DNA from: Piromyces finnis finn
Lineage: Eukaryota > Fungi > Neocallimastigomycota
NCBI GenBank assembly: GCA_002104945.1
Contig: MCFH01000078.1
Coordinates: 62,001-126,000, forward strand
Length of the DNA: 64,000 nucleotides
Reading direction: 5' to 3'
In this document: positions 25,413 through 28,699 of the stretch, piece after piece
Layout: every line of letters begins with the position of its first letter
Numbering within the stretch: position 1 is the stretch's first letter
Made by a program: the position numbers and the translations under genes
The notes under the pieces: model-generated
Told to the model about the DNA's origin: nothing
Database searches by the model: none
The model's input: the letters and a program-made list of their open reading frames with translations, nothing else

Positions 25413-27880
25413 ATGGCAGAAAAGAACAAGTTAAATCATGATGGTTTATTACAGTTGGAACAACCATTAATCAAGGTATAAGATATTTAATATAAATAAA
25501 TGTTGTAATTAAAAACATTTCCAATAACTATTTATTTATATTAAAATGACACTACCTACTATGATTACTTTATATGAAATGCGTTTTATTTATTTATTAT
25601 TATTATTATTGTTATTATTATTGAATAATAAAAAAAAAAAAAAAAAAAGGCACCTTTAGAACAAATAAAGAAAAACTTTCGTTTATCTCAAAAGCATATA
25701 GAAAAAGAAATGATGAGATTAAATCAATCTATAATAGACATTACAACAAAGCAATCTCAAAATAAAATTGATTCACAAGAAACATTAAAATTATTAGATG
25801 GTCTTGTTAACAGATTAAAAAGTTTAAAAAAAAAGGTATGTATATATATAGTAAAAGTAAAATTTAACTTTTTTAAAAAAAAGTTGTCAATACTGTTTTA
25901 TAGCGTTTTAAAACAATAAAATGTTTTATTTATTATTATTATTATTATTCTTTAATAATTTTATTTTATTTTATTTTTTTTATGTAATTCTTTTTTAAAC
26001 AATTTCTATTTAAAAAAAAAAAAAAAAAAAAAAAATGCATTATTCAAATTCAAATAGTTGGAAGAATTAAGAAGAGAAGAAGATAAATCAATAAAAAGTT
26101 CTAAAATAAGATTAAATCATATGAACGAATTAACAAATATTCAAAGTGCAGATTCAGATATGTATTATAGATGGAGTAAAGTAAGATTAAATAGATACAT
26201 TGCTGACTATATGCTTCGTAATAATTTTATTGAAAGTGCAAAATTACTTGCCAAAAATTCTAATATTGAGGTAAGTTTTCTAATTTCCATTTAATGTTGA
26301 AAATAATATACAGATATATAAATATATAAATTATCCTATTTTATTTTTGTAGAAAGTTATTTAGTATGGAAGAAAAAATAAAATAATTAAAATTCTATCT
26401 ATCACTATATATTTGTATATTCAATTTTTTGATTCACCCCTTTTTACGAATGAATAAATATATAATAGGATTATGTCGATATAGATTTATTTATGCAAGC
26501 TAATATAATAGAAGAAGCATTAAGAAATCATAGTTGTACCGAATGTTTACAATGGTGCAATGAGCATCGTTCCAATTTGAAGAAAATTAAAGTAATAAAC
26601 TGCTTTTTAACTTTATATGAATTGAAAAATTATTTCATTTTATGACTAACGATTTTTACTATTATTTTAATTATTATTATTATTATTACTCTAATTCTTC
26701 TTCTTCTTCTTCTTCTTCTTCTTATTATTATTATTATTATTATTATTATTTTAATAATAATCAAATTCAACCAAAAATTAATGGGGATAAAAAAAGAGTA
26801 ATTTAGAATTTAAATTAAGATTCCAAGAATATGTTAATCTTGTAAAAGCTAATCAATATCAAGAAGCTATTAAATATGCTAAAAAATATTTAACACCATA
26901 TTCAGACGTTTGTTTAAAGGATATACAACGTGCAATGGCATTATTAGCTTTCACACCAGATACAAAATGTGAAGTTTATAGAGTAAATATCACCCAAAAA
27001 AATAAAAAAAAAAAAAAAAAAAAAGCATTTAAATATTGATAGAAAGAAAAAAAAATTCATATTAATTAATATTTTATTTATAAATACTTTATTAAAAAAA
27101 AAACAACTCTTTTTTTTTCATTATTTCACTCAAAAAGAAATTATTTGATGATAATTATACATGGAATGAATTAATTCAATTATTTAGATCGGATAATTAC
27201 ACTTTAAATAGTTTATCTTCTAGATCTCCACTTGATTTCTGTCTTGAAACCGGTTTATCTGCCTTAAAGTCACCATATCCTTTTTTAAACATCATAATAT
27301 ACATTATATAGATGAGTTATGATTATATTTATCTTATAACATCGATTTACATTATTTCATTATTTCCTTAACCTATTATGGGGAATATTTATTCCTATTT
27401 TTATTTAAGTACATGTTGTTTCAGAGAAGAAGATAAAAATATTAATTGTCCAGTTTGTTTTGATAAATTTAATACAATTGCTAAGGAGTTACCTAATGCT
27501 CATCATGATAATTCTTGTATTGTTTGTAGAATTAGTGGTAAGATTATGAATGAAGATAATGAACCTATGGCTTTACCTAATGGACATATTTATTCCTATT
27601 CGGTAATTTATAATATATTCTATATATTTTATATTAAAAAAAATCAAATTAGTAAAGATGAATATTTTTTTTTTTTTTATTTCAATTTATTTTAACAACC
27701 TTTATTTTTTTTTTTATAAATTTTATTAAAATATTATTATTACACTATAACAACTATTATAATTAAAAATAAAAAAAGGCTCTTGAAGAAATGGCAGAAA
27801 AGCATAATGGAATTATTACTTGTCCAAGAACAGGAGATCAATTCAAATTTAGTGACTGTGTTAAAGTTTTTATTACCTAA
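25413..27880 (+). CDS. FYV10: GID/CTLH E3 ligase subunit Fyv10/Gid9 (MAEA), 8 exons
   Basis: LEQPLIKAPLEQIKKNFR; LisH RLNRYIADYMLRNNFIESAKLLAK; CTLH EALRNHSCTECLQWCNEHRSNLKK; LEFKLRFQEYVNLV; GLSALKSP; CPVC...LPNAHHDNSCIVCRISGKIMNEDNEPMALPNGHIYS...ITCPRTG. Confidence 0.95.
27275..27412 (+). other. U12-type (minor spliceosome) AT-AC intron in FYV10
   Basis: 5' end ATATCCTTTT, branch sequence TTTCCTTAAC (27363-27372), terminal AC at 27411-27412. Removal gives in-frame LKSP|CCFREEDKNINCPVC. Read-through hits a TAG stop inside the intron. Confidence 0.88.
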
Positions 27881-28699
27881 GAGTATTCTTATTTATCTTT
27901 TTTTTTTTTTTTTTTTTGACTATAATATCTATTCAAATATTCTTATTATTAATATATGAAACACATCTATTTAAATTAAAAAAAAAAGATAAATCCAATA
28001 TCTTAAAAATGTCAAAAAAAAAAAAAAGTTACTAAAAAAAATAACAATTAAGATAACAAGAATCAAAAGAAGAAGAAAAAAGAAGTATAATCAAAAGAAT
28101 TACTTTTTTTTTTTATTATTTGTTTTATTTTGATTATTTTTTTTATTTTATTTCAAATAATTCATGTAAAATAATATTTTGTTTTTACCAAAATAATTCA
28201 ATATATAACAACAAAAGCAGCTTTTTTTTTTCAATCCTATATCAATTATAAAATAAATTATTATAAAGTAAAAAAATATATAAAAATGAATTGCTTTGTT
28301 TTCTTTTAAAAAGAATAGACTCAAGTTCATTGTCCTATTAATAATAATTTCTTTTTTTAGTAAATGGGTGTAATACTTAAATTATTATTTGGAAAAAAAA
28401 AAATAAAATATAATCCTATGGTTATCATTATTTATTATATATAATAATTAAAAAAAATAAAATATATAAAGGTTAATTTTCTTAATAAAAGAAAAAAAAA
28501 ATAACAACAACATTACATTGATTTAAAATAAATATATATATTATATATATTATATATCATGATAAAAAAGAGTGGGTAATCCTAATGGTTTAATTAAAAT
28601 TTTTCTTTCTTTTTTTTTATTCATTTTATTTTATATTTTATTTATATATTTCTATTTAAATGGGTTTATAGATTTTATAGATAGAATATTTTTTAAAAT

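Follow-up and report, generated by a model that had tools for sequence, protein, structure and literature searches.

A U12-type AT-AC intron very probably interrupts the MAEA/Fyv10 orthologue of the anaerobic gut fungus Piromyces finnis

Gene and exon structure

We analyzed a 64,000-nucleotide stretch of Piromyces finnis contig MCFH01000078.1 (hereafter the window; GC content 19.6%), which carries an orthologue of MAEA/Fyv10 (GID9) on the plus strand. The gene model below is based on contig mapping, a count of frames and stops, and Pfam and PDB matches, with exon borders taken from the mapping of three contigs of relatives (L006, L007 and L008).

25413-27880, plus strand: MAEA/Fyv10 (GID9) orthologue, 8 exons, 399 codons plus stop
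25413-25475, plus strand: exon 1
25650-25835, plus strand: exon 2
26058-26270, plus strand: exon 3
26469-26591, plus strand: exon 4
26797-26982, plus strand: exon 5
27138-27274, plus strand: exon 6, ending in ...GLSALKS plus CC (bases 1 and 2 of a Pro codon); Pfam CTLH at 2.7e-7; K44 corresponds to human MAEA K298
27413-27602, plus strand: exon 7, RING-Gid part, (P)CCFREEDKNINCPVC...; human MAEA 302-364, E=2.2e-16; zf-RING_UBOX
27779-27880, plus strand: exon 8

The exons were searched singly, and the joined sequence was used only for translating the junction and for counting codons and stops. Exon by exon, Pfam placed LisH in 26058-26270, CTLH/CRA across three consecutive exons (profile positions 2-34, 36-99 and 102-144), and a zf-RING_UBOX finger in 27414-27602. 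In the PDB search, exon 6 matched residues 259-298 of human MAEA, and exon 7 matched residues 302-364 of human MAEA as well as yeast Fyv10; the matches to human MAEA (8pjn_i) had E-values of 2.2e-16 and 8.9e-5. The gene thus has the order LisH, CTLH, CRA and C-terminal RING-Gid at a length of about 400 amino acids, which agrees with the MAEA/Fyv10 identity proposed in an earlier note on this DNA. The same note had read the other junctions as GT-AG, and this holds for the remaining six of the seven MAEA introns; these six are all in phase 0, whereas the AT-AC intron alone is in phase 2 (frame script).

In a word search with the open reading frame (ORF) of L007, orthologues carry the names MAEA, FYV10 or GID complex subunit. 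Among the matches listed, the best named one was from Basidiobolus (54%), and none was a full-length MAEA from the P. finnis genome or from named Neocallimastigomycota. Additionally, a compound (ATT)n/(CTT)n microsatellite lies inside MAEA intron 4 (window 26650-26765).

The AT-AC intron and its signals

The following features lie between exons 6 and 7.

27275-27412, plus strand: predicted U12-type AT-AC intron, 138 nt, phase 2; missing from the spliced contigs of relatives, which have the junction AAGTCACCA/TGTTGT
27275-27284, plus strand: minor 5' splice site ATATCCTTTT, matching /RTATCCTTT and identical in a relative's genomic contig (L005)
27363-27372, plus strand: branch-site consensus TTTCCTTAAC, with the presumed branch A at 27371; TTTTCCTTAAC is kept in L005
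27365-27372, plus strand: core branch motif TCCTTAAC, complementary to GUAAGGA of the U12 candidate
27392-27398, plus strand: degenerate TTCCTAT resembling a branch site; its A27397 is 15 nt from the acceptor (direct reading)
27411-27412, plus strand: 3' terminal AC, the first AC 3' of the branch consensus, with an AG at 27408-27409 before it

By script, we reproduced each coordinate that the earlier note had claimed for the intron, its branch motif and its terminal AC. Exon 6 ends at 27274 with ...ACC GGT TTA TCT GCC TTA AAG TCA CC, and the unspliced frame runs on through KSPYPFLNIIIYII to a stop, just as had been claimed. In the spliced frame, CC and A form a Pro codon and reading continues with CCFREEDKNINCPVC (script). 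Across this junction, K44-S45 of exon 6, the split Pro and C1-C2 of exon 7 align with K298-T299-P300-Q301-C302 of human MAEA, so the KSP-CCF register put forward in the note is gapless against the human protein, and the same junction is shared by the intron-free contigs of relatives. The trinucleotide CAT occurs at both borders, which allows four border placements with the same mRNA; we prefer the AT-AC placement because, among these four equivalent borders, it is the only one that fits a known intron class. GT-AG pairings of a donor at 27253 with an acceptor at 27409 or 27424 were also considered and rejected, as they break the frame and delete the conserved GLSALKSP.

At the base composition of the window, the 5'-site 9-mer alone would be expected to occur by chance about twice per 64 kb (our own estimate). 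The pair of ATATCCTTT and TCCTTAAC is located exactly where homology to MAEA stops and then resumes. A 5' site of ATATCCTTT, a branch motif of TCCTTAAC, an AC end and a non-zero phase are all shared with classical AT-AC U12 introns, of which intron F of human P120/NOP2 is reportedly an example, going back to Tarn and Steitz in 1996.

In the mechanism that we envisage, U11 and later U6atac would engage ATATCCTTTT, and GUAAGGA of U12 would pair with TCCTTAAC, bulging A27371 (or A27370). The first AC downstream, at 27411-27412, would then be taken as the acceptor despite a distance of 41 nt, and splicing would join CC/A as a Pro codon, restoring the RING-Gid domain.

The junction in relatives

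We scanned a metagenome collection with exon 7 and obtained five loci. Three of them, L006, L007 and L008, each hold a single uninterrupted ORF of 399 amino acids and align with the window in eight blocks that are directly adjacent to one another in the contig, which indicates that all seven introns are absent from them. The junction reads AAG TCA CCA / TGT TGT TTC AGA GAA in L007 and L008 and ...CCA / TCT TGC in L006. The word search with the L007 ORF also returned P0001 (92% identical to L007), whose junction LKSPCCFREEDKNINCPVC equals the predicted peptide, and P0003, which is encoded as one intron-free ORF on two 1.3-kb Logan contigs from two sequencing runs (L041 and L042), so that these two contigs look spliced too. 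All five spliced contigs carry a single ORF of 399 amino acids and read ...LKSP followed by CCF or SCF at the junction, and they represent relatives at 75-92% amino acid identity, that is, strains other than that of the window.

The genomic contig L005, from a close relative (95% amino acid identity in exon 7), keeps the intron, at 155 nt, in the form cc/ATATCCTTTT ... TTTTCCTTAAC ... ataatAC/a. Compared with the window, L005 preserves both signals as well as the terminal AC, whereas the remainder of the intron has diverged and is not confidently alignable. The exons 3' of the intron are open and 89-95% conserved. Sequencing runs X1-X4 hold 0.38-0.43 of the words in 25600-28000, which is about the share expected of spliced mRNA by our own estimate, a fraction that cannot resolve a single intron.

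Based on these observations, we hold with high confidence that 27275-27412 would prove a genuine U12-dependent AT-AC intron in a gut-fungal MAEA/Fyv10 orthologue. From the sequence features and the relatives we infer splicing in P. finnis itself, the identity of the branching A and dependence on the minor spliceosome.

Age and history of the intron

Comparison of the intron position with animal MAEA, as suggested in the earlier note, showed that MAEA of the coral Stylophora pistillata (L032) has an intron of 1209 nt in the same Pro codon (LKTP) and in the same phase 2. Its signals are U12-like, acacc/GTATCTTTTT ... TTCTTGAC, the latter about 16 nt before the AG (cag), and it has no polypyrimidine tract. 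The coral intron differs from that of P. finnis in being GT-AG, in that each motif is one base off the consensus, and in its normal short branch spacing.

Mammals have a comparable intron. MAEA is listed as a human U12-intron gene (PMC13135317), and the 5' 12-mers of the minor intron are ACC/GTATCCTTC in mouse Maea and ACC/GTATCCTAC in human MAEA (Olthof et al. 2019, PMC6717393 supplement). The mammalian intron lies in the same gene, near its 3' end, and follows the same three exon bases as in P. finnis tcACC/ATATCC (PMC6717393); it is GT-AG, whereas that of P. finnis is AT-AC, and its positional identity is judged from the 12-mers alone. An intron at the same site was absent from the annotated genes of all seven early-diverging fungi sampled: Basidiobolus meristosporus, Spizellomyces punctatus, Geosiphon pyriformis, Rhizopus microsporus, Hyaloraphidium curvatum, Batrachochytrium salamandrivorans and Phycomyces blakesleeanus.

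Judging from these sequence comparisons, the MAEA minor intron was probably ancestral to opisthokonts and kept in animals and anaerobic gut fungi. In the simplest reading, its subtype switched to AT-AC in gut fungi, being GT-AG in animals, and the intron was lost in the seven other early-diverging fungi sampled. It would then cleanly illustrate a change of subtype in an old opisthokont minor intron, one that survived in Neocallimastigomycota. In practical terms, an annotation of this E3 ligase subunit will include its RING domain only if the intron is treated as AT-AC. Given the matches listed in the word search, public gut-fungal models of MAEA may be broken or missing, in line with the truncation by gene callers that the earlier note had predicted.

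Genome census and branch-to-acceptor spacing

In the genome, ATATCCTTT is followed by TCCTTAAC within 29-90 nt at 18 places (L010-L027), compared with one in a backwards control. In most of these 18 pairs, long open frames are brought together in frame when the first AC, located 11-18 nt beyond the branch A, is taken as the acceptor. The GT version, GTATCCTTT...TCCTTAAC, occurs once in the genome; with 18 AT pairs against one GT pair, the AT-AC subtype dominates among perfect-consensus pairs. Usually it is the GT-AG subtype that is in the majority. Some spacings are longer, namely 24 nt in L012 (TAF4), 29 nt in L026, 34 nt in L021 (Rpb1-like) and 62 nt in L013 (TMEM231), where the acceptor of each was taken as the first in-frame AC, from open frames only.

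In the MAEA intron, the distance from the branch A27371 to the intron end is 41 nt, and the corresponding distance in L005 is 55 nt. No AC occurs between the branch consensus and the AC used, and the sole AG there is that at 27408-27409, 3 nt upstream of the AC used. Minor introns have a branch-to-acceptor distance of 10-20 nt, with an optimum at 11-13 nt (PMC8199999), and classical AT-AC U12 introns differ from the P. finnis MAEA intron in this respect; the short spacing is a typical trait measured in mammals and lies outside the definition of the U12 type.

The long spacing raises the question of where branching occurs. The intron could be of U12 type and branch at A27397 in the proximal TTCCTAT, the distal consensus serving early U12 recruitment or having no role. 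A27397 lies 15 nt from the AC, inside the textbook spacing of 11-20 nt, and UCCU with a bulged A could pair partially with GUAAGGA of U12. However, L005 lacks the proximal motif and has instead a poly-T/CT spacer, with the distal TTTTCCTTAAC kept 55 nt from the AC; TTCCTAT is the less likely branch because it has no counterpart there. Furthermore, other consensus AT-AC introns of the genome have spacings of 24-62 nt as well, and the proximal TTCCTAT falls within a possible hairpin. We therefore regard branching at A27397 as rather improbable. The hairpin itself (AUGGGGA/UUCCUAU) can form pairs, but the 61-nt fold has a z of -0.10 against shuffles and the L005 spacer is an unrelated poly-T, so that the hairpin is not supported.

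A second alternative keeps the same 5' site and places the acceptor at the AG of 27408-27409, which would give a 135-nt in-frame AT-AG intron and the junction KSP-T-CCF. Splicing to this AG would preserve the reading frame, which is open on either side, and AT-AG minor introns exist, but the extra Thr is missing from all five spliced relatives and from P0001-P0003, human MAEA aligns gaplessly without it, and L005 has no AG ahead of its AC, all of which makes an AT-AG intron highly improbable here. The AT-AC intron ending at 27412, with the distal branch consensus, is the reading that we retain.

Minor-spliceosome components in the genome

We searched the assembly (56,455,805 bp in 232 contigs) with Rfam models, the search that the earlier note had proposed for the minor small nuclear RNAs (snRNAs), and obtained candidates for all four. 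U12 (66.6 bits; cut-off 53) and U6atac (52.1 bits; cut-off 33) scored above the cut-off, whereas U4atac (49.2 bits; cut-off 53) and U11 (38.2 bits; cut-off 39) fell just below it. The coordinates of two of these are as follows.

L002:1501-1649 (G000:C112:211500-211648): only U6atac candidate, Rfam
L004:1501-1615 (G000:C152:317514-317628): U11 candidate, Rfam, 38.2 bits

All four candidates are full-length matches with Sm sites, and the U12 candidate retains the branch-pairing AUGAGUAAGGA. The 5' end of the U4atac candidate, GCGUCCUUAUCU, is perfectly complementary to AGAUAAGGACG of the U6atac candidate (stem II), with both sides changed relative to the family consensus. Such complementary changes on both sides of a stem argue that these two candidates are a real working pair. 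Among minor-spliceosome protein domains, the genome encodes an SNRNP25-type Ubiquitin_4, scoring 35 bits, and a finger of the zf-U11-48K type, scoring 27.9 bits; zf-U11-48K domains are not confined to the minor spliceosome. The search for PDCD7 (59K; PF16021) matched nowhere, controls included, and was uninformative.

Some of the candidates deviate from the canonical sequences. The 5'-splice-site pairing box of the U6atac candidate is GCCGAGAGA instead of AAGGAGAGA, without the canonical AAGG; the candidate reads GAGCCGAGAGACAGUUGGCAC, compared with GAAAGGAGAGAAGGUUAGCAC in the family, and has GGC where the AGC triad is expected. It has no GG to form the classical pairing with CC of the 5' site, a pairing that is said to have been established by the suppression experiments of Incorvaia and Padgett. 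Two pattern searches of the genome for a canonical second U6atac, allowing up to three mismatches, returned only chance-level matches that Rfam did not recognize. The U11 candidate begins with AAGAAAAGUU / AAGAAAAGUUUU, without GG (the consensus 5' end being GGG); its AUCAAGA loop and Sm site are preserved.

One might take the odd 5'-site pairing boxes of the U6atac and U11 candidates as a sign that the major spliceosome removes this intron as a non-canonical AT-AC one, or that the gene is broken and yields a truncated protein without RING, but we find this barely credible, as U2-type AT-AC introns carry a GTRAGT-like ATAAGT 5' site, unlike ATATCCTTT, both U12 signals are perfect and kept in L005 within an otherwise drifting intron, the downstream exons are open and conserved, and the genome has minor snRNA candidates and many similar introns. 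A U12-dependent intron remains our preferred reading. It is conceivable, albeit a tentative suggestion that we would not presume to be correct, that the gut-fungal minor spliceosome works under altered rules, accepting the first AC at 24-62 nt or more and reading CC by other means, e.g. by a protein.

The earlier note had concluded that this genome retains a minor spliceosome; the four snRNA candidates are in line with that conclusion, yet it is not new, because both minor introns and minor snRNAs have been described for P. finnis, by name, in a published survey (Larue & Roy 2023, NAR 51:10884, PMC10639083). The Neocallimastigomycetes introns described there resemble the MAEA case in species, intron class and presence of minor snRNAs, and the MAEA intron is in all likelihood among those counted in the intronIC survey of these authors. 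The MAEA gene, a long branch-to-acceptor spacing and snRNA sequences are not described in the text of that paper (PMC10639083). As an instance, then, the MAEA intron is of a kind and from a lineage already published, and it is ordinary save for its distant branch signal.

Further work might be worthwhile only on the spacing and on the unusual features of the snRNA candidates. With a long and recurrent spacing and a non-canonical U6atac, this lineage could serve to test how strict the spacing and base-pairing rules of the minor spliceosome are. In addition, a SNORD14-like box C/D RNA (L004:2162-2325; 52 bits, cut-off 64) lies about 550 nt from the U11 candidate, on the opposite strand.
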